From positions 248,001-312,000 of the forward strand of contig QPMI01000434.1 in assembly GCA_004431415.1 (NCBI GenBank): DNA of 64,000 nt, read 5' to 3'. The notes beneath the pieces are model-generated. The model saw only the letters and a list, made by a program, of their open reading frames with translations, did not search any database and had not been told where the DNA came from. The stretch comes from Cyanophora paradoxa CCMP329. Lineage: Eukaryota > Plantae > Glaucophyta. Of this stretch, positions 5,809-64,000 are shown in pieces. The number at the start of each line of letters is the position of its first letter. The stretch's first letter is position 1. The position numbers and the translations under genes are program-made.

Positions 5809-6877
5809 TCATCGCCGGGACGGCGGGAGGGAGGTCGGACGGACGCGAGGGGAGGAGGTCGTGCGGCACGAGTCGCAGCCGGCGTCGCCCTCTTTCGAGA
5901 GCCGCCCGCCCGTCGGCACCGCGTTGTTGCGCGCGCCCTGCGCGCCCTTGTTGACGGAGCAGACGCTTCCGTCGCAGTCGCGTATTCTCCACCGCTCCGC
6001 CATGCCTGCACGAAGTGCGCGGTCAGCGCACCGCCGTTCGGACATTGTACGAAGAGGAGCGCGTACCGACGCACGGCACCGCGGGCTTGCCGACCTTGCG
6101 ATTCACTTCATTATGCACCTGCATGCCCGAGCGAATGAGCGCACTCCGGCGTGCACCGGGATAGTCCGCGCACCTCGCAGACCCACGTGCTCAGATCCTC
6201 ACGAGATTCCAGGCGCGGGGGATGCCGCTGCACGATCTGCTGAAAGTCCTTCCGACATTCCGCACACGGATACACCTCCGTGAACGAGAGTAAGAACGTG
6301 CGCATCGCCCTGCGGCCGAATCAGCGGTCGGTCGAGGTGCGTGCGGCGGACCGGCGAACCGCTTGTCTTGCTCTGTCGGCTGCCGCGGATACGATGCGGC
6401 CGCTGTGTGCAAGAGCGTCCATCCAGCACGCCCAATTTCGTCTCTTGTGGGCCTTGGCGGCGCCCGCGGCCGTCGCCGGAAGAACGAGAGTTGGAAAGAC
6501 AGGTGCGGGACAGAAGCGGAGCAGAGGAGGCGGCGAGGGCCGGGGGTGGAGCGAGGAGATGCGAGAGCGCCTTCAAGCTCTCCCTTCGGGGCGGTGCGCT
6601 GCTGGAAGACGAACCGCTGCAGATTCTTCTGGAAAGGACCGCTGCTCCGCCGCTGCACGCCCCGCTCGAATACAGCGTCCCCGAGCGCGTCGGAAGCCGG
6701 AGCTGCGTCCGCTCTGCACGTGATGATCGCCCTCACGCGGCCGAGCAGGCTAGACGGGTCCGCCCAGATCCGAGCCGCCCCAAAGTCGCGGGCAAAACCC
6801 ATCACAGACGGAGCGCGCACGATCGCGCGCTGCTGTTTCCGCTTCTCCGGGTCGGTGATTGGGAGCCACGCCCGCAT
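5809..6877 (-). CDS. ERV1: Erv1/ALR FAD-dependent sulfhydryl oxidase
   Basis: DEIGRAGWTLLHTAAASYP, YPCAECRKDF (CxxC), WVCE|MHNEVNRKVGKP, C-terminal CDGSVC/CDSC; start codon uncertain. Confidence 0.85.
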
Positions 6878-7508
6878 CTCATCAAGGTCAAGTGTACCCC
6901 CGACCAGGCACTATGTGTGGTACCCCGGGACCGCAGGCGTCACTAAGTGATGAGGCGTGCGCATGCAGGCCTGGGCGCGTGCAGGCCTAGGCGCAGGCGC
7001 CACGCGCACTAGTACTCCGGTTTGACAGAACTAAGTTCGATCAACCCGGGTGACCGCCGCTGACCGGTCCCTACCAGGCTGCAGCGCTAGCTGCATGCGG
7101 GCCGGGGCCCCGCCGGCGCCGGGCCGCCGGGCCGATCGCGAGCCTCCGGAGCGACTCGGCGAGCTCGAGCGCGGACCGTCGGATCCGGACCGTGACCCCT
7201 GCGCATGCTGCATATGCATGCCCATGCATATGACCCTTGTATACTGGATGTCGTTAACGTTATCTACATTTGGGGCTCTCAGTTACACTCGCACAGGGCC
7301 AACCCCCCTCAGGGCCTGGCGGATGGCGCCGGATGCCCTGCGCATGCGGCCGGCCGGCGCCGGCGCCTAGCTATAGCTATATAGCCGCCTCGGCCGCGGC
7401 CGACGTCGACATGCATATGCGCATGGCGCGCATGCGCGCGCGCGTGCCGCGCCGGGTGGCGGCCTGGGTCCCGACGCGACCGTCGCGATCGAGCCGCGGG
7501 GCCGGGGC

Positions 7509-10500
7509 CTACTCCTCGCCGACGAGGACGCCTGCCTGGGCCATGGCGCGCTCCCGCTTGGCGCCCGGCCCGGGACCCTCCTCCACCCTCACCTGCCTCC
7601 AAGAGTCAGGTGCGCGGACCAAGATCGGGGCCGGCTGCTCTAGATCTTGAATTGGGCGCATGGAGCGCACGCGACGGCCCTCGGCTGCGCTGCGCTGGAG
7701 TGCCTGCGCATGCCCGGGTCACTGAGTACTGCTGCGGCCGCGGCCGCGGGGCCGGGGCGAGGGGCGCCGATCGCGACGGGGGGTACGCGAGCCTGGGAGA
7801 GCTCCTCGCGGATAACTGCCCGCAGCGCCTCCCGAAGCGCCGCCGCCTGCTCAGACCCCGGGGCGGGGGCGGCGGCCGGGGCCGGGGCCGGGGCGGCAGC
7901 CGGGGCGGCCGGAGGCGGCGAGGGGGAGCGGGCGCGCGGGGCGCGGGAGGCGCGGCCGGAGGCCTGAAGGATGGCGCGCCGCACGTGGGGCCGCTGCGCA
8001 GCGCGCCCCAGCGTCGGCCGCGGGGCGGCGGTCGGGCTCTGCCGGGGCGGGGCGGGGCGGCGCGCCTGGATCTTGAGCTGGGGCGCCCCGTCGGCGTCGC
8101 CGTGCGTGGGCCGCCGCGCGCCGCCGCGCGTGGAGGGCGGCCTGCGGGGCAGCGCCGGCCGCCGGCTCGGCCCACGGCCAGCCAGGCGAGGATCCCGCAG
8201 GGGGCGGGGCGGGGCGGGCGCACGCGGACGCGTTCGGCGGCGACGATGGCGGCGAGGAGCGGCGAGAGGAGCAGGCTCATCGCGATCACCTGCCGCCCCG
8301 CCCCGCCCCGCATCGCCGTCAGCTCCCGGGCCCGCTCCCTTCCCTCTTCCTCTTCCCCCGAGCTCCCCCGGGCGGACCTCGACGCGGGCGGCGGTCTCCT
8401 TGGGGAGGTAGAAGGTGAGGGGGTACAGCACGCCCCGCGCGAGGTTGAAGGGCGGCTGGAAGACGAAGCCCTGCGGGGCGGCGCGGCTCAGCGCGCGGCC
8501 TCGAGGCGGGGCGGCGGGGGGGGGGGGGGGGGGGGGGGGGGCGGGCCCGCTCGCGCTTGAAGTACTCGACGACGCGGAGGGCGTACGAGTGGAGGAACAT
8601 GCGGCTCGAGTCCTGCGAGATCACCATGTACCTGCGCCGCCCCGGGGCGTCAGCTGCAGGCCCGCCCGCCCTCCCGCACCCCGCCCCGGCCCCGGCCCCG
8701 GCCCCACGTGTCGTTCAGCTGAGGGGGCTCGCGATCAGGAAGGCCCCCGTATCGGATGGGACCGGATCGGATGGGACCTGGGCGATGAGGAGGTTGAGGA
8801 GGAGGACGAGGGCGACGACGAGGTAGAGGTCCATCAGCAGCGGCCCGAACAGCGGGTGGAAGCGCGCCGCCTGCCGCCCCGAGTCGGCCCAGGTGGCTAG
8901 CTAGCTCGAGGGCGCGCTGAGCTCGCGGGGCGATGCATGCGCACCTGGCCGAACGACGAGGGGTCAGATCGGAGGGCGCCGCAGAGAAGGGCGAAGGGAG
9001 AATCGCGGTGAGAGGGGCCTCACCTTGTCGAACTCGGTCTCCTTGAACCAGGCTAGAGGGGGCGGGGGGGGCCCCCCGGGTCAGGCGAGCGGGCGCACGC
9101 GCGGTTGAGGAGGGCGACGAGGAGGGAGAGGAGGACGACGAGGGCCAGCACCCCGAAGCTGCCACCCAGCCGGCCCCTCGCCCACCTCAGCGAAGCGATG
9201 ATCGAGAGGGCCGCCGGGCGGGGGCGGGGGCGGGGGCGGGACGTGGCGCACGCGGCGGCGAGGAGGCGGCCGAAGAACGGGTTCGCGGCCTCCGCCTCCT
9301 CAAAAAATGGAGCCTCCGCCGTGAGCGCTTTCCGGCGTTCAACGCCCCCCGCCACCCACGCCTAGGGCTCGCCGCGCTAGCTAGGGCTGGAGCGCCGGCC
9401 GGGAGCCCGGCGCCCGGGGCCTAGCTACATCTCTGGGAGAGCGCCGCGGGGCCGGCGCACCGCGGAAGAGCATGGAGAAGATCTCGAGGTAGCTCGCGTG
9501 CCCCACCTGCCCGGAGCGTGTCGGGGCCCTCTTGGCGGAGCTCGAGGCAAGGGCGGGGAGGGGTCCGGCACGGTGGAGGCGGTCGACTGGTAGAGCGAGT
9601 GGAACCTGCCCGCGGGGCGGCGGCTCGGCCCGGGGGGCTATCCAAGCGGGGGAGGCGGGGGCGGGGCGCGGCGTACGCCTGGGTGAACCCCATGAGGACC
9701 TGCGGGGGAGCAGCAGGGGCGTGAGCGGAGGAGGGCCGGGGGGCGGGTGCGGGGGCGGGTGCGGGGGCGGGGGGGCACGAGGGCCATGATGGAGAAGAAC
9801 AGGGCGGCGTCGCGGATCATGTGGCGCAGGATCACCAGCAGCGCCCCGAAGAACTGCCCCGGCGCTGGGGCGCGCGGGGCGGGGCGGGGCTGGGGCCGGG
9901 GCCGGGGCCGGGGCCGGGGACCTCGACGTTGGAGAGGACGTTGAGGACGCGCATCCACAGCACCACCGCGTTCACCGCCAGCACGTCGAACGACCTGCCG
10001 GTCTTTGTTCGTTAGGTTTTGTTAGGTTTGCGGGGCGGGGCGGGCGCGCAGGTCCATGAGGCGCTCCCGCTCGGCCGGCTCGGAGGCGGCCAGGGAGGCC
10101 ACCCGCAGGCAGAACGCCCCCGCGAAGACCTGCACCGCCCCGCTCGGGTAAGGGGGTAGGGGGTGGAAGCGGGGGGGGGGAAGGAGAGGGGGGTAGGCCG
10201 CGCCGCGTAGGTGACGATCTCGAACCAGTTCCAGAGGGAGAGGAAGTACATGCCCGGCCGCCGGATCGCCTGCGGGGGGCGGGGCGCCCTGTCAGCTGGG
10301 TGGGCGCGGGCTCGGTGGCCGGGGGGGCCGGGGAGGGGGCGGGGGCCGCACCGTGGCGCCGTCGTCGAGGACGTAGGCGAGCACGAAGAGGTACATGCAC
10401 ACCTGCCCGCCACGCCTGAGGCGGCGCGTGCAGGTGCGCGGTACCCCCCGGGGCCGGGGCGGGGCGGGGCGCGCCTCCTGGCCCGTGAGGGGCATCGAGC

Positions 10501-12237
10501 GGGAGTTGATGACTGCGGGGGCGTGTGAGGGGGTCGGGGGGGCGGCGGGGCGCGAGGGGCGGGCCCCAGGTGTAGAGGAGAATGAACGAGAGGAGGATGC
10601 CGGTCTCGATGAAGTACTGGTACTGGGGCACCCGCAGCAGCGAGAGGTCCAGTGCGCCCAGCGCCCGGTGCACCTGGCCCCGCACCCCCGGCCCTCGGCG
10701 CCCCGCCGGCGAGGCTCCAGAGCAGGCGGTCCCCCGGGCGGGGCGGGGCGGTGCGGGGCGGGGGCGCGCCAGCTGGGCGTCCTTCTCGGAGGCCATGAGG
10801 ACGTGCCCGTGCCACATCTCCTTGATGCACGCCTCCACCCGCGGGTCCGCCCTGCGCCCCGCGTTGGGCGGCGCGAGCCTGAGCGCCAGGATCGACTCGA
10901 GAGGGGCGAACACGATGTCGAGGAGGCCCAGGAGGACGACCTGAGGGGGCGGCGCGTGACCCGCGGGCAGCCGCCGGCAGTTGCGGGATGCGTGAGAACG
11001 AGGAGCGGCGCGCCTGCTCGATGGCGGAGGAGGAGCGCTCGCCCGCGTCGTACCGGTACGTCCGCACCAGCACCCGCGAGCACAGGTCCACCAGGCTGCC
11101 GCCCGGCGCCGGCCAGGCCGCGCGCCGGGCATGGTTAGGCCGACGGAAGCGCGGAGGCGAGGCGGGCGGCGCGGCGGGCACTCGTAGTCGTCCATGAGGC
11201 GAAGGGCCAGCAGCTCTGCGGCGCGGCTCGCGCCGAGGAGAAAGCGCAGAGCACGGCGCAGCGGGGCGGGGCGGGGCGGACCGCAGGCGCGTGCGCGGGC
11301 GTGCCAGACTAGGCGCAGGACGTGCTCCTGGACAGGGGTCGCACGCAGGGCGCCGGAGGGTCGGACGGGGACGCAGGGGGAGGGACCTGGGACTCCTTCT
11401 CGTGGCACTGCGAGCACGCCAGCAGCGAGGCGAAGACCTGCTCCCCGCGCGCCGGCCCCGCGCGGCGTCGCGCCTCGCGGAGCGTGCGCAGGCGGGCGGG
11501 CGCACGGATCGCTTGCCGAAGCGCTTGCCCTGCAGAGGGTGCGTCGGAGTTGCCGGCGCGCGCGCCCGAGAGCGCGCCCGAGAGCGCGGCGCGGGCGGCG
11601 GGCCGGGCACCTTGACAGCGCCGACGATGTCGTGGAAGGCGGGCAGACGCTCGAAGTGGGCGCGCCGAAGGTCCAGAGGCTCCACTATCTTCGCCACGCA
11701 CATCTTGAGGATGAACTCCGCCTCCGCGGTCACGTCCTCCGGCGCGAGGAGCGGATCGGACTCTTTCTGCGGAAGGACTCAGGGACAGGTGTATCTTCCT
11801 TTAAGCACGCCAACGGCGGCTCGCCTGGGCCGGCGTGAGCGCTGAATCCAGCTCCTCGGCATGCACGACGTCGTGAATTCGCTCGGAGGCGACCGCCGCG
11901 GCAGCAGAGGCTGCTTCAGAGATTCTGCATTGGTAATTAATTCCTGCAGCGGCCGTGGCAAGAGCGGCGTTGCGAGCGCGCACGCTGTGGCCGCGCTTTT
12001 GATGCTCATCCTCCGCGAGCGCACTCGCGGGCCGTGAACAGAGCTCGAGGGGCTCGAAGCCGCCGCTTCATCAGTGCTGCGCGCTTCAGTACTCACGCTC
12101 GCGCGGCGCGTGCCAGGAGATTCAGCGGAGGAGCTCGAGCGGTCAGCGCTGAGAAGCTGCTTGCGACCGCGCTCAGCGGCCGCTTCCGCATCACGCGAGT
12201 CGTGCGCGGCCTGCGCCGGACTGGGCTGCGCATGCAT
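7509..12237 (-). CDS. TRP-type cation channel (TRPY/Yvc1-like), many exons, alternative pore cassettes
   Basis: LLRVPQYQYFIE, FLSLWNWFEIV (S3), VLWMRVLNVL (S4), FFGALLVILRHMIRDAALFF (S4-S5), LLLNLLIAQLNDTY (S6), FQPPFNL; gene ends approximate. Confidence 0.8.
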
Positions 12238-12398: not shown

Positions 12399-15300
12399 AT
12401 GCGGGGCGCAGGGAGCGCGCTGGGCTTGCTCTGCGTGGCGACGCTTCTTTCCTGGGTAGCGGGGCAAGGTCCAGGCCATGCGCCCTGTGCCACGCGCCCC
12501 GCCAGCTAAGCGTTCCCGCAGTGGCCACGCCGTCGCCGGCGGGCTCGGCACCGCGCGCGCCGCCAGTGCCAACGGGTCTGAGAAGCCTGGACTATTCGAC
12601 GCGGTATCTTTCTGTGGCCTGGGACTTCCCCATCGGCGCGGATGCGTCCGTCGTCTTCGAGCTGCAGGTCTTCCCGCGCGGGGCTGCGGGGCGCCGGCGC
12701 AGCTCTGAAGCGGGCGGTAGGCCTCTCTGCGCACGGCGGGGGCGAACGACACGCAGGCCTCGTTCGTGCGGACGCAGCGGACGACAGCGGCGGTCTCGGG
12801 GCTGATCCCGGGGCGCGTGTACGCGGTGCGGGTCCGCACCGTGGACCCCCGCTTCAACGTCTCCAGCGCATTTTCCGACGGCCTCGCGTTTCTCATGCGC
12901 TCCGAGGGTCCGTCCCGCCCGCCTGCCTGCCCACTCCTGTCCTGAGGCCCGGGCCTGTTCCAGTGCCGGACCCGCCGGCTCGCCTGAGGCAGGTGAGCAA
13001 GACGGGAACGAGCGTCACGATCGCGTGGGACCGGCCCAACGACAACGGCGAATCCCTTTTCGGATATGAGGCGCGACGTGGCCCGCCGCCCTCCGCCCGC
13101 CGCCCGTATGACGCGCCCCGGCAGGTCGAGATGGACAACGGCCCGGGGACGGAGCTTCGGGGGGTGCGCAACACGTCGAGGGAGGGGTTCCGCGTCGACT
13201 TCCTCAACATGGGCGTCTGGTACCGCTTCCGCGTCTCCGGTACCCCCCTCTCCGGCCCGGGTACGGGCACCAACGGCCCCTGAGCCCCCCGCGCAGCGTC
13301 GAATATGCTCGGCCGCGGGCCCTACTCCCAGACCCTCTCGATCCGCACATCCGCCCGTCCGCCCCGTTCCGCGCCCCGCCCCGCGCCCGACCGCTTTGCC
13401 CGACCTGCCCCCCCCCCCCCCCCCCTCTCCCCCCCCTCCCCCCCACGCAGCGCCCGAGCAGCCGGAGCCCCCGACCCTCATCCTCTCCCGCGATTTCAGC
13501 CTGGTACCCCCCCCCCCCCCTTCCTCTGCAGAAAGCCGAGGTGAACAAAAGAACAACAGGTGGTGGGGTACGTGCCGCCGGACCCGAATGACGCGGCGAT
13601 CGACCTCTACCGGATCGACATCGACCGGCTCGAGGGCGGCGGGCCCTTCAACTCGGCCAGCACGGCCATGTTCGCGTGCGCCCTCCCCGCGCCCCCGCTT
13701 CCTCCTTGCTTCCGCCTTCGCGGGGCGACGGGGGCGGGGCAGGGTCGCGGGGACGACTGCGGCGCTGGAGTTCGAGGCGAGGGGCCTGGTCCCCGCGCAC
13801 CCGTACGCGCTCCGCGTCGCGGCGCGCAACGCCAACGGGTTCGGGCCGCCGAGCCACCCCGCCGTCTTCAGCACGCGCCCCGGAGGTCCGTCCGCCTCGC
13901 CGTCCGCGCCCCTCGTGCGGGGGAAGCTCGGCGCGATCCCCGCCCTCTCGCCTCGCCGGCAGCGCCGCTGGCGCCGGTGAACCTGACGGCGTGGAGCCGG
14001 ACGCCCTACTCCCTGAACCTCACCTGGGGCATCCCCTGGGACTCCGGCTCCCCCGTCACCCGCGTCGAGGCCCGCCCGCCCGCACCCGCCTCCCAGCGCC
14101 TGGTCTGACGCCCCTGCCTGCCCAGGTGTGGCGGGGCCCGAGCGTGGAGCTCGAGTTCTCGCCGCTGGGCAACGCCAGCGTCACCTCGTACGAGGTGCGC
14201 GGCCTCCGCCCGGGCACCATGCAGGCCTACAAGGTCCGCTCCCTCCGCTGCTACGCTGCTGGCGCCGGGCTGAGCGGGGCGGGGCCAGGTGCGGGCGGTG
14301 AACGCGTACGGGCCCTCGCCCTTCTCCGAGGCCGTGGAGCTCCTCACGCTCCCCACCAACCCCGAGATCCCCGTGCCCGCGTTCCAGCCTGTACCCCCCG
14401 TCCCGGGGCGCCGGGGGCCTCACGGACGCGGGGCAGGTGAACCTGCGGGCGCTCTACGTGAACTCGAGCTACGCGATCGTCGTGTGGGACCCGGGCCGCA
14501 TCAACGGCGCCCTCTTCATCCGCTACGAGGCCCGCCTCCCCGAGATCAGACCCATCAAACCCCTCAGACCCCTCATCTCGGCTCCTTCAGGTGGAGGTCT
14601 CGATCCCCGCGGGCCCCAAGGTCGACAACCGCGCGGCGAACGTCACGGAGACGGAGTACAAGGGCGCCAACATGTACCCCGGCATGACCTACGCCCTCCG
14701 CGTCCGGACGCGCAACGCCGTGCGCGCCTTCTCCCCCCCCCCCTTTTTTTTCGCGGGCGGCGGTTCCAGCGCCGCTGAATCGGCTTCAGGTGGGCCCCTC
14801 CGACTTCACTGACTTCCTCTTCTTCCAAATCGACTACCGCGGTGCGCCGGCCGCCCCGGCCGCACCGTCGCCCGCCCCCGCCGCTCACCTGGCGTTGCGC
14901 CCTTGGGGCAGTGCCGGACGCGCCGGACGCGCCCTTCCCCATCGACCACACGCGGGACAGTATCACGGTACCCGCGGCCCTCCCCGCAGCGGCCCTCGCC
15001 GGGGCCCACCGCGCGCCCCAGGTCGGCTGGCTGCCCCCGGCCGAGGACGGCGGGAAGCCCATCACGGGGTACGTCGTCTACATCGACGACGGCTTCAGCG
15101 GCCCCTTCGGCATCTACACGCGCTGCCCCAGTGACCGGCCCGACGTGCTCCAGTGCACCGTGCGCGTCCAGGGCTCGAATCCCCGCGGGGCCGTTTCCCT
15201 CACCGCCCCGCAGATCTCGGACTTGAAGCCGAACCAGTACCGGGTACGCGTTGCGGCGCGCAACGCGGTCGGCCTCTCTGTACCCTCGGGCATCCTGTCC

Positions 15301-16489
15301 TACGCCACCTTCTTTGAGGGTACCCCCCGCCACTTCCCCTCGACGCTGTGGGGCACGCCCTTCCTCAGGCGCTCCGCAGGCCTCGACGTGTACGACTTCA
15401 GCGTCGGCGGCGGCGTGCGTGCCCGCCCCGCAACCTCCCCCCCACCCGCCCGCCCCGCCGCGCCGCGCCGCGCCCCCGCCCCCGCGCCGAGGCGGCCGCT
15501 GCAGATCGCGCTCGCCGGGGCGGCGCACATCAACACGGTGAACGGCCACCTGAGCCTCACGGACTCGCTGCCCAACGACGCGCTCTCGCCGGAGGGGTAC
15601 GCGGGGGCGGCGTGGAGCATGCAGAGCGTGGACATCGAGAAGGCGTTCGACGTGCGCTGGGTCTTCGCCATCCTGAGGCAGTCCGCGACCTGCAAGGCGC
15701 CCGTCAACCTGCCCCGCGACTGCGTCCGCCGCGGCGGCGACGGCTTTGCCTTCGTCATCTGGGCCGCCTCCAACGCCTCCCAGTTCGCGGTCCGCTCCGC
15801 TTGGCTGCCTCCAGGCCCGCCGCCTCGCCCCGGAGCCGACGGGCGCGCCTTCTCAGGTGGGCGACACCGCGGAGGGCCTGGGGTACGCCGGCATCCCCAA
15901 CTCCGTTGCCGTCGAGTTCGACACGTGGTCCAACAGGCCCGTACCCCCCTTTCCCCTTTGCCCCGGTACCCTTCGAACCCCGCGCAGCGAGCTCGGGGAC
16001 CCGTACGACAACCACGTCGCCGTGCAGACGCGGGGCCCGCTGCCCAACAGCGCGAACCACACGGCCACCCTTGCCGCCGCCAACGCCGCCGTACCCGACC
16101 TCAACGACGGCGCCGAGCACCGGGTACTGTACCCCGCTCTCTTCCGGCCGAGTTCCGATCTGGTCTCATTCGAACCGAAGGGCCGGGTCGTGTACACGCC
16201 GTGGTTCGACCACGCACTGCTCTCCGGGGCGGTCGCGGGGTACCAGGTCGGGGCCGGCCCGCCCCTCTTCCCCTTCACGGACCCCCTCTCCCCTCCGGGG
16301 GTACTGGCCGTCTTCGTGGACGACCGGCACGTGCTCTCTGTGCCCATCGACCTGCGCCTCGCGCTCGACTGGACGAACGGGACGAGCGTGCTGCGCCTCG
16401 GCTTCACGGCGGGGACGGGGACGGCGTACCAGGCCCACGACCTGGTCACCTGGCTCCTCTTCTCGGGCCTCGAGGACCTCTCCACCTAG
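12399..16489 (+). CDS. Secreted/surface protein with multiple fibronectin type III repeats and a C-terminal L-type (legume-like) lectin domain
   Basis: Signal peptide MRGAGSALGLLCVATLLSWVAG; repeated W...Y.(V/F)RV.A.N..G FN3 motifs; lectin motifs GGDGFAFVIW, GLGYAGIPNSVAVEFDTWSN, DNHVAV, GFTAGTG. Confidence 0.85.
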
Positions 16490-17574
16490 CCCCTCCCTCG
16501 GCCTCTTTCCACTTTGCTTCGCCCCGCCCCGCCGCAAGCGGCACCGCTCCTGCAGCTGCTCGAGCTCCATCCTCGAGCTCCCTGCTCCAACTTCACATCA
16601 CGCCCCATCTTCGTCTTCTCGCTCGGCCCTGCTGGCCGCCTAGTACCAGCGGCCCTCTCTCTTCCCTCTCCCCGCCCCCGGCACCCAGCCGTTCCTCCCC
16701 CCTCCCTCCTCGCTAGCTTGCGCATGCTCCTCGCGCCCCGATCGCGCCGCGGCGCCCAGCCTCTGGCCCACGCCCTGTCCCTGACCAAGGCCGCGCGCGG
16801 CTCGCTTGCCCTTTGTTTGATCGTATGCCGAAACCTAGGCCTAGGTCTAGCTCTAGCCCGGTAGCCTAGCTATAGTAGACCGCGCGCTGCTAGCCGCTGA
16901 GCGAGCTAGCACTAGCCCGACGTCGCCCGACGGCGAGAGGGGCGCGCGGGGCGGCCGGCCGCGGGGGCAGCTCGACCACGGCCCGTCGGATAGAGCTCGA
17001 GGCTAGAGCTAGAGCAAGGCGTGCGCGAGTTCGATGAAGGCCGAGGCGATCGTTCCTCACGCTTGGCTCAAACGTTGCACCCCCCGCGCGCTTTCTCCCC
17101 AGTACTAGTACCGTAGTGCGACCTTCGGAAGTGAAGTCCCCGACTCGGTGTCCGCGTCCGCACTCGGCGCACGGCGCGCTTGCATCTTTTAGGATCGATC
17201 GATCAAGTACGCTGCTCTCCGCCGCCGGGCGAGCGTGGCCGGAGCTCATCGAGTTCTCCCGCGCTAGCCAGCCAGCGCGTAAAACGCCGTCGGTGCGTCA
17301 TCTAGGGTACCGCCCGCGCACGGCACACCGCCCGCTTCCAAGGGACTCGGACCAGTCTCGCGCACCAGATCTTGTCTCGAGCATTCCAACTTGTCTGAGA
17401 GGTCAGTCTACATCGAAGTAATTTAACAGATCTCCTCAGCTACCGCGATTGTGACGTTTTCCCGCAGCTGACCACTCGCTTCGATCGGCCGGCGCAAGGC
17501 GCCGGCGCCAGCGTTGACTGTGGCGGCGTCGGCCTAGCTGGGAGACGGCGGAGACGGCTTTAAAATCAGGCCGC

Positions 17575-54498: not shown

Positions 54499-56200
54499 TC
54501 AAGGAGCGTGGGGGGCGGCACCCTGGGGCACCTGCAAGGTGCCGTGCGAGGGGGGTGGGTGCGTCATGCGCTGCAGGACGTGGCGGATTAGCTTGAGGTT
54601 GGAAGAGACCGCCGTGATGTCAGCCGCCGCGACGGCCGCGGCAGCGGCGGCAGCGCGCGCGTCGGCTCGCTGGGCCGCCCGCGCCGTGCTTCCAGAGAGA
54701 TGGGGTCGGCTGGGAGGGGACGGGGACTGATTGGAGGAGGATTGTCCGGGGACGGCTCCGGGGAGGGCCGAGTCCGCGGGGACGGAAGCGTGCGGAGCAG
54801 GGCTGGCATCGGCGTCGGGGGGTAGAGAAGAATTAATCGGGACCACGGCGTTCGGGTCGGCGCTCTGGCCGTGCATGGGGGAGTCCCCGGAAACAGCAGG
54901 GGGATTTCCTCCCACGGGCGAGCTCGACGGGCCGGCACCGCCGCCCTCTCCCGCGCTCGTCCCCGCGGCGACTTCTCCGCCGGCGGATGTTCTGGAGGCG
55001 GAGGTGCTGGGCATCGGGTCCGGCGGCTGCTCCACGGCGAGGTAGATCTCCCCCGTCGCCATGTCCAGGTACGCCTTGTTCCGCGCCGTGAACGCGTGCT
55101 CCTGCGTGCGGGAGCGACGTGAGAAGGCGGCGCCCGCTGGAGGGGGCGCGTGGCGGGCGGCGCCGGCGCGCCTTGTAGACGATCTCGAAAAACTCGAGGT
55201 CCACGAAGGGCTCCCGGAGGACGAGCTCCTGCGTGGGAGAGGCCCGTGCTGCGCTCGCGCTCCTCGAAGGGCTGGACCCCGAGCCCGCGGCGTCCTCGTC
55301 CTGCAAAATCCGCGCGCTCGAGGCGCCGCCGACGCCATCGCCCGTGGACCCACGGATGACCACGTGTGCTGGGAAGCGCAGGGGCACCAGGAAGCACGTC
55401 AACATGCCGAAAAATCGCGCCCTGCAGAGTGTCAGAGCGGGTTGCATGCGCGAGGGGCCGATCGAACAGGCGCACATGCTGTATACACGCTTCTCGCTCC
55501 GACCCATGCTTTTGATCACGTATTCGCCGTTGCAGCGCTCGTGACCGTCAACTCTGAATCGTATGCGTGCCTTCTCCTTCCCATCCTACGCACAGTCAGC
55601 GCCAACATCCCCAGCGCTTGATCAGAGGAGGTACCTCCACAAACATCTCGTCCCGGATCCAGGTAAGCTCCACGCTGAATACTCTCTGCGAGTTGCTCTA
55701 AGCACACACTGCGCCATATCGATGCACGTGCGGCGCACCTTCGCTTTGCGCAGCTCCTCTTCGTGCTCGGCGTGGGGGGAAGTAAGCACCATGCGCCGCT
55801 GGGACAGCCTGATTCCCGACGTCAGACCGCGGTTAGATGATTCAACACAAGCGAAGGACTCACCAGAGGTCGCCTTCACCATGCCAACTGCCGCCCACCA
55901 CGCGCTTCAACCGAACCTTGGCACACAAGAACATCGTGACCTCGCCTAATAGGGGCATCAACAATCGCTATTGCATTCGCAGAGCAGCCGTCCCCCGCAC
56001 CAGCCTTCCGCCGGAACGGCAGCCTGAGCCCGAACGCCGAGAATCCTGACCGCAGGTCAAGGGAATCAACGCAAACTGCATCATAGATACCGGGCGAGAT
56101 GCGTGCTGGAGCGCCCGCCTGCTGCGCAGTGGCAACTGCGTGGGCGTGCTCGGGCTCCTCGAGCTGCGGCGGATGAGCGCGGTGGGCATCGCTGTCATCC
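54499..56200 (-). CDS. Uncharacterised protein (multi-exon)
   Basis: Exons ELVLREPFVDLEFFEIVYK|EHAFTARNKAYLDMATGEIYLAVE...; no family recognised. Confidence 0.4.
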
Positions 56201-56339
56201 CTCCTGCCAAATAGGAACCGCAGCCCACTCATTGGGCCCAAGCGGCTGTGCTATCGCTCCTCAATGCGTCCTGTTTCGCTGCTGTTGTTTGACGGGGGGT
56301 ATACGCCGACCCGCGCGACTCGACTCGGCGGCTTCCGGA

Positions 56340-57429
56340 ATGGCTCGGGAAGGATGCAGCGTGATGTTTGTGCGCGGGGCGCCGTCGGGTTTTCTCTCCC
56401 GCCCTGCTTCGCGTTGACTGGCAAGCTGCAGGAGACTTCGCTCGGCAATGTGACATGCGAGCTGTACTGGAAGCACGCGCCGAAGGCGTGCAGGAACTTC
56501 GCGGAGCTCGCGCACAGAGGATATTACAACGTGCGGGTCCCGCGTAGTAGCGAGAAGCCAGCGCTAGCGTCTAGCTGCCGTGCTCCCGGCGAGCAATCTA
56601 TCTCCTGCATGATCGTTCGATGATTAGGCTTTCGTCACAGGACGCGCCGCCGCGCATCTAGCCTGTATCTCTTTCCGCCACGCGGAAGCTCGTGGCTCAT
56701 TTGCTATGCGCAGGGCGTTCCGTTTCACAGGATTATCGCCAATTTCATGGGTGCATACCCTCATCAGCCCAATGCACTCCATCAGGCTAATGCTCGCTTG
56801 CCTTCTTCTCGCAGTGCAGGGAGGTGTGGATGAAGACACGTTCCATGTGCGGTTTATGTCTACTGCTTATCCGTTTGCAGGTGATCCAACGGGGACGGGC
56901 CGCGGCGGCGAGTCTATCTACGGGAAGGCATTCGAGGATGAGATAACGATGCAGCTGAAACACACGGGCGCCGGCATATTATCCATGGCGAACTCGGGGC
57001 CAAACACGAACGGATCGCAGTTCTTCATCACTCTAGCACCATGGTATGTGCCCCGCTCGCCCAATGTCCTGGATTGCATACAGTGCCGTCTACCTCAGAT
57101 GCTGTAGTGCCCTCGTGCTAGTGTGCCCTCTACCACACTAGAGTGCCAGTGCACTCACATGCTGCAGCCCGTGGCTGGATGGAAAGCACACCATCTTTGG
57201 AAGGCTCAGCTCCGGTATTGGAACCCTCCAGGTTTTTTCCTTGAACTTTCTCTTCCTCGACTTTTAGCTGACTTGGTTGTGCCACGCACAGCGGCTAGGT
57301 TCAGTTGTGACAGACAATGACGATCGCCCAATTGATACAGTGAAAGTTCGTATTCTATATATCACTCTCTATATCTGCCCAGCCTTTAACTGTAGGATCG
57401 GGCAGATCATACGGGCACAGATTGTCTAG
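56340..57429 (+). CDS. PPIL1: Cyclophilin PPIL1-like peptidyl-prolyl isomerase
   Basis: [31 protein letters not shown]|[52 protein letters not shown]. Confidence 0.93.
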
Positions 57430-57560
57430 GATTGTCTGAATCATCATCCGGGGATTGTCTGAATCATCATCCGGGGATCGGGGAGAAGTTCGGATCTCTG
57501 CGTGGGGCTGTCAGGGGATCCGGATGAGCCCCGGGGGACGCGTCAACATATTGAGCATGA

Positions 57561-57673
57561 CTCCCTCAGGGCACCAGTCCCTGCGGGTTACGCTCTCACC
57601 CAAACAGCACGGGTACAGTTAAAGCGCTGTAGGTAGGAGGTCCGGCGCGCCCGTAGCGTAAAAAGAGCATGAA
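57561..57673 (+). ncRNA. Stand-alone copy of 113-bp element (candidate Fanzor omegaRNA scaffold / ghost locus)
   Basis: 110/113 identical to 61941-62053; no Fanzor coding sequence nearby. The repeat is certain; the RNA role is inferred. Confidence 0.5.
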
Positions 57674-58085
57674 TCCCCGGGGGGAACCGCACATGTGTAG
57701 CCCACACAGCCGTAGGTCACAGACAATCGGATGCAGCTAGCTAGCCGCTAGCTTTCGTGTCTATGCTGAACGCACAGTAGCTATAGAGCTGTACCCGTGC
57801 TGCCCACGCCCCGGTGACGCCCGCAGCTGCAGGCCCGAGCGCTAGCGCTAGCTAGGCCCATCGGCGAGCGTGATCGTTACCGCAGCATTTGTTTACCGCA
57901 GCAGGTGTCAGGCAGTGATTCGGACTCCGGCGGTAACGCGGGCACCGGGCGAACTCGGACTGCGATCTGGGCGTCTCAGGTGCTAGCGCAATCGAATGAA
58001 GATGTCGCCGCGCCCCGCGCGCCTCCCTCTAGCTAAGATTTCAGCGCTTTCGATCTCGTTAGTCTCACGCGCCGCGCCTGCGCAG

Positions 58086-60340
58086 ATGAAGCGTGCAGCC
58101 GCGAGATCTAGCGCGCCGGAGAGATCGAAGAAGATAGCGAAAAGCGCAAGAACCTCTGCCCCCGCGCCGAAGTCGGCCGCAAAGCGTACGCGCGCGCCTC
58201 CGCTCGAGATCGCGCTCTGAACGCCACTCGACAGCGCGTGCGGTGCCTTCTTCGGCTACAAAATCTTCTCTCTTGAGCGAGATTAACAAGTTCCTTGATC
58301 CGAAGCCGCAAGGCACGAACCCGGCCGCTCTCTTATCTACTTGGGCTTATGAGCGCACAGAGGCTGAAGAGGACGATGTATTTATGGACGGTGCCAGAAT
58401 CGTCGGCCCGTTTGACGAGGCCGACAGCGAGCCGCACGAGGACGACAGGTATTTCTGTGCCGTTTTTCTTGGGTGGCTGTCCCTGACTGTTGTTTGCAGA
58501 CCCTTCTCCGCCCGCCTACGCCGCTCGAATCTAGACGAAGATCCGAAGTATGCTGGTCAGAGAGTCTCTCGCGCTCAACTGCAGTCCGGTGTGTACTGCG
58601 ATTATCAATGTGTTGTTTTCCTGTCTAATGTTCCAAAGATGACAGCGAGGCCTCTGGTGGGGCCCACGAGGACGATGATGAAGCTGTAAGCGGAGCCCGC
58701 TTCCATACTCTTTCTACATGATCGACTTTTATGCAGGGGGAAAGCTTCGGATCAAATGAAGACGATGGGGAAGCGATGCCTGGTCTCGATGATGATGACA
58801 GTGATGAAGATGACAGCCATGATGAAGCCGAGGAGGGTTCTGGATCAGAAAAAGCATCAGCATCCCAATCGGATACGGATGTGACGAAGCACGACAAATT
58901 GTCTAGCCAGCAAGCTGAAGAGGATGCCACTCAAGTTTTTGGAGGCCAGGGTCAGGATGATGCAGATGCAATGTTCGAGAAAGCCAAGAATGTCAAGAAT
59001 CAGCGAGTGCGTCAAATATTAAAATTCGTCTCACTCAACACTTATTTTGCCAGCGCAGTTCCTGCAGGATCAGTTCTTGGATCTGCGTATTCGTATGCAG
59101 AAACTGCTTGCAGCAGCAAATCAGTTCCCACAAGTAAGTTTTCTCCAGCTGGGTCGCTTTTAATGAGCTTTCAAGCCGAATCAGGTCACGGGGCACGAGA
59201 TTTTCACGAAGCATTCTCAAGAAGTTGCACATGCATTCAAGGAGTCCAGTGACGCCATCCAAGGACTTCTTCGTGACATGTTCGATCTGAGACATGTGCG
59301 ATATCGTCTTTCCTTGTAAGCAAGAAATTTCTGCTCACGCCACTGGTTAGAGTCTGGCTCGGCAAAACAACGATCTGCAGTCTGCTTCGGATCCTCCTTC
59401 TGGTCCTTCTGGTCCTTTTGGCCTTTTTGTTTGTTGTCAATTGACTATCGATTTCTTTTGTGCAGCCCCATTTTCCATTGACGATGCATGGACTCACATT
59501 GAGGAGTGCGCTTCCAGGTTCGCATAATGCTGCATTGATGTTCTGGGCGTAATGTATTGATCCCTCCATGCAGCTTCAAAGCTTTTCAGAACGAAACAAT
59601 CGACAAATGGAGTCGAAAAGCTCAGCTCGCAAGCGCTTTGGGTTCCATGTCAAACATGAAGGCTCTTAACCAGGTTAGACTGTCTCGAACGGTTTCCAGA
59701 AAGTGACGTAACACAACTCGGGCAGAGCATTGTAGCACAGATTGAGAACATCCTTGCTGACGAGCAGCGATTGGTCAAGCGGACCCAGCTCAAGCGGTCT
59801 CAGTACAAGATCTTTGGAAAGGTGCTTGATCTCTCTCTTTTCAGGATGATTTTGTCGTGGCCGACACCAGCAAAAGAAGGAATCTGGTGCAATTCAAGAG
59901 CAGACAGAACATAAGAGGGATCAACATCTTCAGGACTATGACGAGGAGGTGTTCGATGACACCGACTTCTACCAGACTCTAATCCGCAGCTTCATCGAAT
60001 CCTCCAATGACCTAATGACCAACTCAAGTAAATTCCAGCCCATGTATTTGCCATTGATTGCTAGGTGATGCCTGGTGCAGGTACTCCGGAGGACTGGTCA
60101 AGGGCGTTCATTGCAATGCGCAACCAACAGACAAAACAACATCGACTAAATGTAGATCGAAAGGCAAGCAAGGGTCGCAAACTGAGGTGCCTGACACGCA
60201 TTCTCGTCATGCACAACACTACCCTGATTTCTTATTGCAGGTACGAGGTACAAGAAAAGCTCGTGAACTTTATGGCCCCTGTACCAGAAGGCGAAAACCT
60301 TGTCTCGTCTGGGCTTTTGTCCTCGTTATTTACTAGCTAG
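58086..60340 (+). CDS. AATF: AATF/Bfr2 (TRAUB) ribosome biogenesis protein
   Basis: LDLRIRMQKLL..ANQFP, FRNETIDKW, RLVKRTQLKRS, VFDDTDFYQTL, VDRKASKGRKLR|YEVQEKLVNFMAP. Confidence 0.92.
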
Positions 60341-60394
60341 CTGTATAGTTAGCAACGTTTTTGAGAGCGATTTTACGTTGGGGTGAGCATTGGG

Positions 60395-60817
60395 ATCAGA
60401 GTTGCGATTACGATCGGAATCAGAGTTGCGATTACGATCGGAATCAGAGTTGCGATTACGATCGGAATCAGAGTTGCGATTACGATCGTAATCGATATCA
60501 GAGTTGCGATTACGATCGGAATCAGAGTTGCGATTACGATCGGAATCGATATCAGAGTTGCGATTACGATCGGAATCAGAGTTGCGATTACGATCGGAAT
60601 CAGAGTTGCGATTACGATCGTAATCGATATCAGAGTTGCGATTACGATCGTAATCGATATCAGAGTTGCGATTACGATCGTAATCGATATCAGAGTTGCG
60701 ATTACGATCGGAATCAGAGTTGCGATTACGATCGGAATCAGAGTTGCGATTACGATCGGAATCAGAGTTGCGATTACGATCGGAATCAGAGTTGCGATTA
60801 CGATCGGAATCAGAGTT
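60395..60817. repeat. Tandem array: 16 units of ATCAGAGTTGCGATTACGATCGGA (11 of 24 bp, 5 of 30 bp)
   Basis: Direct reading. Confidence 0.95.
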
Positions 60818-60849
60818 ACTATGTTATAATTAACGTTGCGATTACGACG

Positions 60850-60992
60850 TCCAACTTTCGTCCAACTTTCGTCCGACTTTCGTCCAACTTTCGTCCGACT
60901 TTCGTCCGACTTTCGTCCAACTTTCGTCCAACTTTCGTCCGACTTTCGTCCGACTTTCGTCCAACTTTCGTCCGACTTTCGTCCAACTTTCG
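60850..60992. repeat. Tandem array: 13 x 11 bp TCC(A/G)ACTTTCG
   Basis: Direct reading. Confidence 0.95.
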
Positions 60993-61598
60993 AATTCGTC
61001 CAGCCTCCATTCTGCCGATGGGCACGTGCGCACTCCGGGGAGGATAACTGGTTCTTCCAGAGAGCCCACCGGAGAGCCCGCCACGTGCGCGTGCAGCCGC
61101 GTGCCGCGTGCCTGCGGCAGAACCGGTTCTTGTGGGCCGGGCGAGCGTCCGCCGCGCGCGGCTCGCAGTTCGTCATTCGAGAAGGGCGTTCTGCGGTTCT
61201 GCGGTGGCGATGGAAAGGTCCGCCGCCGCCTCCGCCTCCGGCGCGCGCCTCCCTCCCGCCGCCCTTTACGCCGGCCCCGCAGACGTCGAGGGAGGCCCCG
61301 CCGCGGTCCCGAGTCCGCACCGGATCCCGTGCGCCTCTGCCGTCTCGCCCTTCGCCGTCTTTCGCTCATCCTCCTCGCAGGGCGAGCCGCCTGACGGGTC
61401 GCGGGGCGCCGCCGGCGCTTCGCCGGCGCCGTCGACTGCTCCTGCGGCGCCTATGGAGCTCGGCGGGGGATACTCGGCGACAGAAGCGGCCACGGCGGCA
61501 GCGAGCTCTATGTGACGATATTGATGAGATGGGGTACATCGTATACAACCCCGAATTCGTGCCCCCGGGGCTTGTATACGATGTACTTGCAATTTCAG

Positions 61599-61910
61599 AC
61601 ACGTGCGGCAAGATCAACTACGGGCTCGGCTCGAAGAGGGTCTTCGAGTGCCGCCCCGGGTGCGGCTTCCGGGCGGACCGCGACGGCGGCGCCGCGCGGT
61701 GCGTGTTGTGTCTATACACGCCTATACACAATCGCTGCTCCCCCCGCCTAGTCCCGACACGGCCTAGCCACGGCATAATTTTCCGTCTAGGCCTAGGGCC
61801 GGCTCGCCCCTCCCAGCGCCGCCCGATCGCAATCGTAATCGTACTCTTGCAGGAGCATCTTCATCCGCTACGGCACCGGCGTGGACGCGAAGCGCCTGCT
61901 CGGTTCGTAG
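61599..61910 (+). pseudogene. Fanzor2/IS607-TnpB C-terminal fragment (zinc ribbon + RuvC-III), two exons 61599-61698 and 61853-61910
   Basis: Spliced peptide TCGKINYGLGSKRVFECRPGCGFRADRDGGAAR|SIFIRYGTGVDAKRLLGS* fits C..CG.....LG....F.C..CG...DRD..AARNI; GT-AG intron 61699-61852; RuvC-I/II not found. Confidence 0.8.
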
Positions 61911-61940
61911 CCAGCTAGCGCTAGGCTCCGATCCCCTTTT

Positions 61941-62053
61941 CTCCATCAGGGCACCAGTCCCTGCGGGTTACGCTCTCACCCAAACAGCACGGGTACAGTT
62001 AAAGCGCTGTAGGTAGGAGGTCCGGCGCGCCCGTAGCGTAGAAAGAGCACGAA
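61941..62053 (+). ncRNA. Candidate omegaRNA scaffold / right end of Fanzor element
   Basis: Starts 31 nt after the Fanzor stop, is repeated at 57561, and has nested stems (CAGGG/CCCTG; TACGCT/AGCGTA; ACGGG/CCCGT; TACAG/CTGTA). Confidence 0.55.
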
Positions 62054-62437
62054 CTTTGGAACTTTGGATGCTGTGGCCCTGTTTCCATGGGCCCATGCCA
62101 GCCCACTGAGTACTAATGGCCATGGCCCAGTGGCACAGGTGCGCGCGCCCAGGCCTGTGGTACACGGACGTGTCTTCTGCCAGCCCGGTACCAGTCCCCC
62201 TGACGACCACACCGGTACAACCCAGCCGAGTACCCGCCACCAGGAGGCAAAGCCGCTGATCATGAGCAAAGGCAGGCGGCAGCGGAGGGCCGCCGGGCAT
62301 CCTGAAGGAGCAGCTGGCGCTGCAGATGAGCGCAGCCGAGTCGCTTAAGCACTAGCTGGATTGCACGATGTAGAAGGAAAGGACACCAAAAAAAGGGTCG
62401 CGATCGTGATTGGCATGTGAGACAACGAGAGCATTTA

Positions 62438-63872
62438 TCACTTCTTAGCTTTCGTTTTCCCCTTTCGTTTTTCGCTTTCGGGCATGTCTTCTGACAGTTT
62501 TGCCATCTGCTCCTCCGCCCTTTCCTTCTCTCTTTCGGCCTGCATACATTCTCATGACGAGGCAGAAGCTCGAGAACGAAATGAAGCACCATCTTCCGTT
62601 CCAAGTGGGGCCTGTAGACCTCCCAGTACTCTTTCCTTGCATCATCAACTGCAGCAAGGAAATCTGAAATGCCCTCTCCAGACACTGCAGACACGCCCAC
62701 AGTCTGTGTGCACGCTCATCAGTGAATGCACGAACTACATACAAGGAAAGAAAGCTTTACCCTGATGTTCTTGTAAAACTAGAAGAGATGACAGAGTGAG
62801 ATGACAGAGTGACAAATCGACCACATGGCACACCTCATCGAGAACCAGCGACATCGAGCGGGTCAGACAGGCTGAGTATGACTTCTCATTGTCCAGCGCT
62901 GCACAGAATGCATCGTAGTCTTGCATCCACTCCGTTGCAAACTTGTGGGACACCACGTCGATTTTGTTGAACACGCAAATAAAAGGAAGCTGGGTTTTGT
63001 ACATGACACTGCAGTAAGCATTAGCTGTGAAGTCGGATAGAGGAAAAGTGTGGGCCTGCACCTGCATGCATACATCATGTTCGACATGAAGGTCGTTGGG
63101 TTTGCTGAGCGAACAGTGTCGACCACGTACACGATCGCCACAGGCAAGGTGGATGCCAGCGACTCCGTGATAATCGCTCCTGACGCAGACCAAGTGAAAA
63201 TCTCGATCTGCCCTGGAGTGTCCATTAAGATGTATCTGCAGTTTTGTCAGTCTCACAGGACCGCATCCAATTTCAACCGCTAGCACTTACTTGATGCCTT
63301 CGCTCGCTCGCTTCTCGACGAATCCGAGTACTTGATCGAAACTAGACGTGCAGCATCAGCGCAGTCGTTCGTATGCTAGCTTGTAGAACATAGCACCGCG
63401 TTGCGAAAAGGTTTAGCGACGTCAGAATGCCGCCGTTTGGGCCTAGATTATACCTGGCAGAGCGTCAGCCATAAGCGCGTCACATCTCCGGCGTATGCGC
63501 ACTGCTTCATGACTGCCTTGTAGTCGACGGTGTCGCGGATGTCGATGTTGGCCGTCGCCGGCGCATGAACCGCTGCAGGGTCAAGGTTGATCACGTATGA
63601 AGGCGTCTTCGTCAGGTGGAAGTGCGCGTTCAGCCTCTGCGCGTTGCGTGCGAGCTTCAGCGCTCGCGCAGCGGAACGTACGCGCGGCAGCGAACCTGCA
63701 TGAGAGTCGTCTTCCCACTACCGGCCATTCCGATCATGATGAGGACGATTGGCTTCTCCGGCGCGGACGACGGACCGGCTTCGGGCGCGCTGGTTGCGTC
63801 TGCGCCGTCGCGCGGCGCCGGCTGCGGCGGGTCTCCGCTAGCCCCGGCTGACGAGCTTGCCGCATCGCTCAT
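62438..63872 (-). CDS. GPN1: GPN-loop GTPase 1 (XAB1/Npa3)
   Basis: [73 protein letters not shown]. Confidence 0.95.
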
Positions 63873-64000
63873 CGCGCAGGCTGCGAGGATTCCAGGCTAC
63901 TCGGATGAGCGCCGTTTAGCTCGTACCCGTCTAGCGAGCATTTCCCGCGAGTTGGTTCCTCCTGGAACTGCCTTCTAGCGCATTCTCAAAGCGGTTGGAG

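Follow-up and report, generated by a model that had tools for sequence, protein, structure and literature searches.

The TRP channel gene tig00020614_g12195 of Cyanophora paradoxa was found to contain two homologous cassettes, A and B, each encoding a selectivity-filter loop and S6 of the channel pore. It was concluded, with a probability of roughly 0.6, that the cassettes arose by an old tandem duplication of the filter-loop and S6 segment and are used in a mutually exclusive manner, B being the major form and A a minor or conditional one. The gene lies on the minus strand of the analyzed stretch of DNA (64,000 nucleotides, referred to as the window), where the following features were recognized:

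7640..12009, minus strand: TRPY1/YVC1-like TRP channel gene tig00020614_g12195; the tail after 8222 and the start codon are placed tentatively
9461..9506, minus strand: last common upstream exon (pore helix), with a phase-1 GT donor at 9460 and the joint 9461>9052
9252..9327, minus strand: cassette A exon 1 (A1; filter, outer loop, start of S6), with an AAG acceptor, score -4.0
9159..9251, minus strand: intron inside cassette A, 93 nt, typical, with a C-rich 5' half and a CAG end
9099..9158, minus strand: cassette A exon 2 (A2; S6 with the gate), with a phase-2 GT donor
9053..9098, minus strand: spacer between A and B, 46 nt, carrying the B acceptor (TAG, score -2.7)
9080..9084, minus strand: CTGAC branch motif, the sole consensus one for B1; its use as a branch point is predicted
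9024..9052, minus strand: cassette B exon 1 (B1; filter), joined in an RNA contig
8778..8870, minus strand: cassette B exon 2 (B2; outer loop, S6), with the B1>B2 joint in X1 and X2
8708..8718, minus strand: cassette B exon 3 (B3), an 11-nt microexon, whose residues match the orthologue P0021
8547..8631, minus strand: first common downstream exon (end of S6, TRP-helix region), with a phase-2 CAG acceptor

The coordinates of the five cassette exons, their AG and GT ends, phases and translations were all as given in a preliminary description of this DNA; as a minor correction, 9461 is the last base of the common exon and 9460 the first base of the intron. The pore helix resides mostly in the common upstream exon; in addition to the filter, outer loop and S6, the cassettes exchange the final turn of this helix. 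Cassette A consists of 76+60 nt (136 nt) and cassette B of 29+93+11 nt (133 nt), both lengths being 1 mod 3, and both cassettes are entered in phase 1 and left in phase 2, although their internal introns differ. With either cassette alone between the flanking exons the frame remained open, the predicted proteins being approximately 639 aa (A form) and 638 aa (B form) long. The frame shifted after A when both cassettes were included, and a stop was reached two codons past the junction when neither was, which bore out the claim that the reading frame makes the cassettes exclusive. A GAG acceptor within A1 was considered as an alternative entry and was rejected as out of phase.

The gene had been described as encoding a TRP channel, and this could be refined to the TRPY1/YVC1 family by domains and by structure 6WHG, both in sequence and in fold. 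The database searches were performed with single exons, open stretches and the public protein, and the search with three in-frame exons matched a single protein, tig00020614_g12195.t1 of C. paradoxa (P0001). LHD_TRPY1, YVC1_C and Ion_trans domains, and no ankyrin repeats, were detected in it by a Pfam scan; the N-terminal linker helical domain (PF23190) scored 39.8 bits and the YVC1-type transmembrane domain (PF23317) 34.9 bits, the cut-off for both being 27 bits. Among solved structures, the best sequence match to P0001 was that of yeast TRPY1/Yvc1 (PDB 6WHG; bioRxiv 10.1101/2020.10.12.336495), with an E value of 1.6e-24, which resembles it in the combination of LHD_TRPY1 with YVC1_C, in the S1–S6 fold and in having no ankyrin repeats. 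The fold was predicted for the A form, as represented by P0001: the S1–S6 model containing cassette A reached a pLDDT of 93.6, and its nearest fold was that of 6WHG at a TM-score of 0.78. Sequence and model support the assignment of the predicted product to TRPY1/YVC1-type TRP channels; a vacuolar location and a Ca2+- and stretch-gated current are traits of the yeast channel.

The nearest named relatives of g12195 were YVC1 proteins of chytrids and mucoromycetes. An MMETSP transcript, L001 (translated as P0021 and P0046), grouped with it at an SH-aLRT of 95, and at least three TRPY1-like paralogues were present in Cyanophora: g24403 (P0026), g8054 (P0036) and g21868 (P0045). The TRPY1-like family is usually presented as fungal. 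The gene and its paralogues suggest that TRPY1-like channels have a branch outside the fungi, represented in Cyanophora by four or more genes. In transcript L001, a stretch of about 100 nt at 600-740 is duplicated and splits the frame into P0046 and P0021, probably through an assembly error.

The public model g12195.t1, the product of an independent gene finder, used A1 and A2 with exactly the boundaries of the preliminary description. At its 3' end the model is wrong: A is joined to B1 out of frame, the protein ends early, and six downstream exons, covering the TRP-helix region and the C-terminus, are absent. Out-of-frame fusion is the usual failure of gene finders on duplicated alternatives, and the two-cassette reading corrects the public model. 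The model was rejected as RNA proof of A since, although BRAKER1 made use of RNA-seq, it misses two junctions that were found here in RNA contigs. An open frame was also noticed at 12236-11800 (minus strand), running from an ATG near 12236 through the annotated start; this frame encodes ESLKQPLL, an acidic dileucine-like motif of the kind used in vacuolar sorting, which is spliced out in the annotated model.

The homology of the two cassettes was evaluated next to the possibility that A arose by chance as a hydrophobic stretch, strayed in as a fragment of another channel gene or results from an assembly artefact. Low-complexity CTC, GTC and GCC runs in a region of 76% GC can indeed mimic a transmembrane helix. 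However, A and B shared 20 of 45 residues (44%) with one gap, and their global alignment score of 70 far exceeded that of composition-preserving shuffles (-16.8 ± 9.7, maximum 27 in 2,000 shuffles; p < 0.001). The alignment had been described as gapless, and this held for the last 37 aa, 17 of which were identical. Against a pore profile built from 56 homologues, with both A and B left out, A scored 38.6 bits, at the bottom of the range of family members (35.5-80), and B 59.7 bits, whereas shuffled A did not exceed 14.8. The sequence nearest to A was B, followed by the orthologue P0021 (18/45); the three Cyanophora paralogues compared and the fungi were more distant, which speaks against a stray fragment. 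Unspliced contigs from the RNA runs covered 9490-9278 (X1) and 9143-9023, the latter followed by spliced B1>B2 (X2), without a mismatch; they fit pre-mRNA and confirm the adjacency of the cassettes, so that the placement of A is not an assembly error. An accidental origin of A was therefore regarded as largely refuted and very improbable.

Further, the protein-level record of A was compared with neutral decay. Copies of B decayed neutrally to the identity of A scored 5-6 bits on average and at most 30.6 in 4,000 runs. The score of A lies above this maximum and its GC3 is 0.91 (common exons 0.97, B 1.0), which argues that A was once under protein-level selection; judging from its sequence, A evolved for a long time under such selection, either past or continuing. 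The conserved family columns F, A, P, G, L, L, L, L, A and N are retained in A, and changes at conserved sites comprise Asp to Glu, Asn to Ser in S6 (a position conserved at 81%) and Ile to Val at the gate; a loop aromatic has been lost as well. Cassette A sits on a long branch as a fast-evolving sister. Cassette B has the family-consensus pore, which is 67% identical to that of the orthologous transcript compared with 49% for the flanks, and it outscored A in 106 of 149 homologues, these having been gathered with an A-bearing query. That the introns inside A and B lie at different positions would point to an old duplication.

Neither a relative of A, nor a relative with both cassettes, nor genomic DNA of a relative was found in protein, profile or metagenome searches; the orthologous transcript L001/P0021 is B-like. 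A 77-aa open stretch over A gave no A-containing protein fragments at E <= 10 in the protein database, P0001 alone appeared as a glaucophyte orthologue in the profile search, which covered at most 8,000 candidates, and the metagenome scan with P0021 gave no match. Two metagenome matches to A were discarded as chance, L003 being an unrelated bacterial-type reading and L002 being placed among stops. Among the homologue models, none other than P0001 carried a second pore segment; loci L001 and L004-L006 had one copy each, and, unlike g12195, the fungal TRPY1 homologue models carry one pore segment each.

The use of the cassettes was examined in four RNA-like contig sets over 8545-10300, the RNA status of which is a guess by the tool, though spliced joints are present in them. 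Cassette B was spliced in: the joint 9461>9052 was found in X1 and B1>B2 in X1 and X2. None of the A junctions was found in the four sets at a depth of 3-5, contigs being prone to drop rare forms; for comparison, the genome paper reports 43.6 + 51 million RNA-seq reads of C. paradoxa (PMC6704402). Since, in addition, even 9461>9052 was present in only one of four runs, the missing A junctions are weak evidence of absence. Of the four junctions proposed earlier for checking, 9461>9052 was thus seen, 9461>9327 and 9099>8631 were not seen in the contigs, and 8708>8631 was not listed. The B2>B3>8631 junctions were not listed among the contig joints, where adjoining repeats had been skipped and two joints dropped. 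The RNA contigs support the splicing-in of B, while for the use of A the support is indirect, from the traces of selection and the arrangement of the splice signals. In X5, the depth table implied a further piece, roughly 37 nt long and close to 9251-9288, that was missing from the contig list. About 40-60% of the predicted intron donors in the window are GC instead of GT, and two of these GC donors were confirmed by RNA joints (9993-10049 and 10128-10203).

These data also bear on the alternative that A is a former alternative pore that recently went out of use and is decaying in a 408-nt intron, so that only B channels are made. Such a history would agree with the restriction of RNA joints to B, with an acceptor weakened to AAG and without a consensus branch motif, and with the long branch, the lost conserved Asn and the clustering of non-optimal codons; past selection would explain the profile score equally well. 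The GC3 exceptions of A are indeed four consecutive A/T-ending codons (p ~0.05). On the other hand, neither a stop nor a frameshift occurs in A1 or A2, all four splice sites of the cassette are intact and in phase, the B acceptor is likewise non-consensus and yet is used, and the power of detection was low, as judged from the B entry junction seen in one of four runs. A decaying A was considered rather unlikely, although it was the strongest of the rival explanations.

Neither was a joint between A2 and B1 (9099>9052) found among the contigs at a depth of 3-5, one contig keeping the spacer. The latter contig, which runs from the end of A2 through the unspliced spacer into B1 spliced to B2, would suit a regulatory switch, in which inclusion of A with the retained spacer or with B gives truncated or decay-bound messages, or A subunits conduct poorly and so damp the tetramer. 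In a message with A and the retained spacer, a stop follows 14 codons past S6, and the conserved S6 Asn is missing from A. The same contig, however, is equally well explained as pre-mRNA with the long intron still present; conservation of the pore sequence, as seen in A, is not required of a poison exon, and the phase of the A2 donor fits the common exon that follows. A regulatory role of this kind was judged improbable.

The splice signals of exclusive use were compared with those of 26 strictly selected introns predicted in the window, as the fuller gene-finder set over-predicted introns. All 26 reference introns end in CAG and score 5.9-12, whereas the cassettes are entered through AAG (A, -4.0) and TAG (B, -2.7); two weak entry acceptors are as expected of competing sites. 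No consensus branch motif was found for the A entry acceptor. The 46-nt spacer is the shortest gap in the gene, the others being 52-153 nt, and the branch A of its CTGAC motif, at 9081, lies 18 nt from the A2 donor, compared with 32-60 nt in the reference introns (16 predicted introns, motif-based). Since another 46-nt intron is present in the window (14391-14436, branch at +32), an intron of this size is feasible here, and the argument rests on the branch position rather than on the spacer length. By its position, the predicted branch point may sterically block the splicing of A2 to B1. A comparable layout is known from OGDH exons 4a/4b, where the short distance from the preceding donor to the branch point keeps the two spliceosome parts from binding together (PMC7969005); in Cyanophora, the branch is predicted by motif and the reference sample is small, and the 50-nt threshold of OGDH is a vertebrate one that may not apply to short introns in which 32 nt is apparently tolerated.

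It was proposed that the common donor at 9460 would choose between the two weak acceptors at 9053 (TAG) and 9328 (AAG). The choice of 9053 would give the three-exon B block with the family-consensus pore as the main form, while that of 9328 would give the two-exon A block, the donor of which would then skip B to reach 8631. Joining of A to B would be hindered by the predicted B branch point lying only 18 nt from the A donor, and messages with both cassettes or with neither, being out of frame, would provide a backup to this steric block. In such a scheme, A would be the minor or condition-specific form.

RNA pairing was rejected as the exclusion mechanism. Nothing resembling a selector-type RNA structure was found, the region folding no better than shuffles (z 0.06), and the inverted repeats were low-complexity C/G tracts. 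The intron after the microexon (8632-8707, minus strand) is G-rich with a GGGGCC-type run, while nearly all other introns begin with a C-rich 5' end; pairing of this intron with the C-tract in the intron of A (25 nt, 88%) or a role as a microexon enhancer is conceivable, and contigs of X3 and X5 continue unspliced into it. Upstream of A1 there are two copies of a CTAGCTAG-type motif (9378-9427, minus strand), which form a hairpin, and a further copy lies in the B1-B2 intron (8889-8915, minus strand); the motif is also common between genes and may mean nothing.

The consequences of the exchange were considered by alignment with yeast TRPY1. The cassettes span the equivalents of the filter residues Leu419 and Gly420, the acidic ring with Asp425 and Glu428, Asn452 of S6 and Ile455 of the gate, and A carries Ser and Val at the Asn452 and Ile455 positions. 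The loop between the pore helix and S6 contains four acidic and no basic residues in A (net -4) compared with three acidic, three basic and one His in B (about 0). Based on the loop charge and the two S6 substitutions, the A and B subunits are likely to be unlike in conductance, cation preference or gating; the changes of Asn to Ser and Ile to Val in S6 of A suggest altered gating. In yeast TRPY1, removal of Asp425 or Glu428/Glu429 lowers the current and leaves the Ca2+ dependence unchanged (PMC6299153), and hence a difference in conductance is at least as likely as a switch of selectivity. The fuller scenario, in which regulated exclusive splicing of the two-exon and three-exon blocks yields two conducting channels and mixed tetramers that differ in ion preference or gating under one sensor domain, is put forward tentatively, at somewhat below even odds.

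Pore-changing splicing is, as a principle, already known from animal channels. Tandem-duplicated, mutually exclusive pore-loop exons 12a/12b of protostome Cav3 have a large effect on Na+ versus Ca2+ permeation (PMC5379919); those are single exons encoding the turret and descending helix in one of four domains and are restricted to animals, whereas in g12195 multi-exon blocks replace the filter and S6 in each subunit of a homotetramer-type channel. Exons 8/8A of CACNA1C are exclusive homologous exons exchanging the pore-lining S6 (PMC8165229), being single exons of equal length that differ in 10/34 residues, in contrast to two versus three exons with other intron positions and 44% identity in a unicellular alga. 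In TRPM3, splicing alters a TRP pore loop in long and short variants (PMC9290681) through an alternative donor that adds 12 residues and leaves S6 unchanged, with no duplicated cassette of the g12195 type. Ion channels of animals are enriched for substitutions of tandem duplicated exons (PMC9741552). The difference from the known cases is that a two-exon or a three-exon block replaces the filter and gate of a TRPY1-type channel in a unicellular glaucophyte; no report of a cassette pore swap in a TRPY1 channel or in a glaucophyte was found in the literature searched. TRPY1 is not known to have duplicated pore exons. If A is used, the gene provides a natural pore swap, in which S1–S5, the pore helix and the cytosolic domains are identical and the filters and gates 44% alike, and pore tuning by duplicated exons, mostly known from animal nervous systems, reaches a single-celled, early-branching member of Archaeplastida.

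In the neighborhood of the gene, a divergent neighbor at about 12600-16700 (plus strand) showed several fibronectin type III repeats by weak Pfam matches, and a downstream neighbor at about 6200-6900 (minus strand) gave a weak match to Erv1/Alr (sulfhydryl oxidase). The GC content of the window falls from about 70% to 51-58% at 56000-64000, possibly marking a mobile or viral insert.
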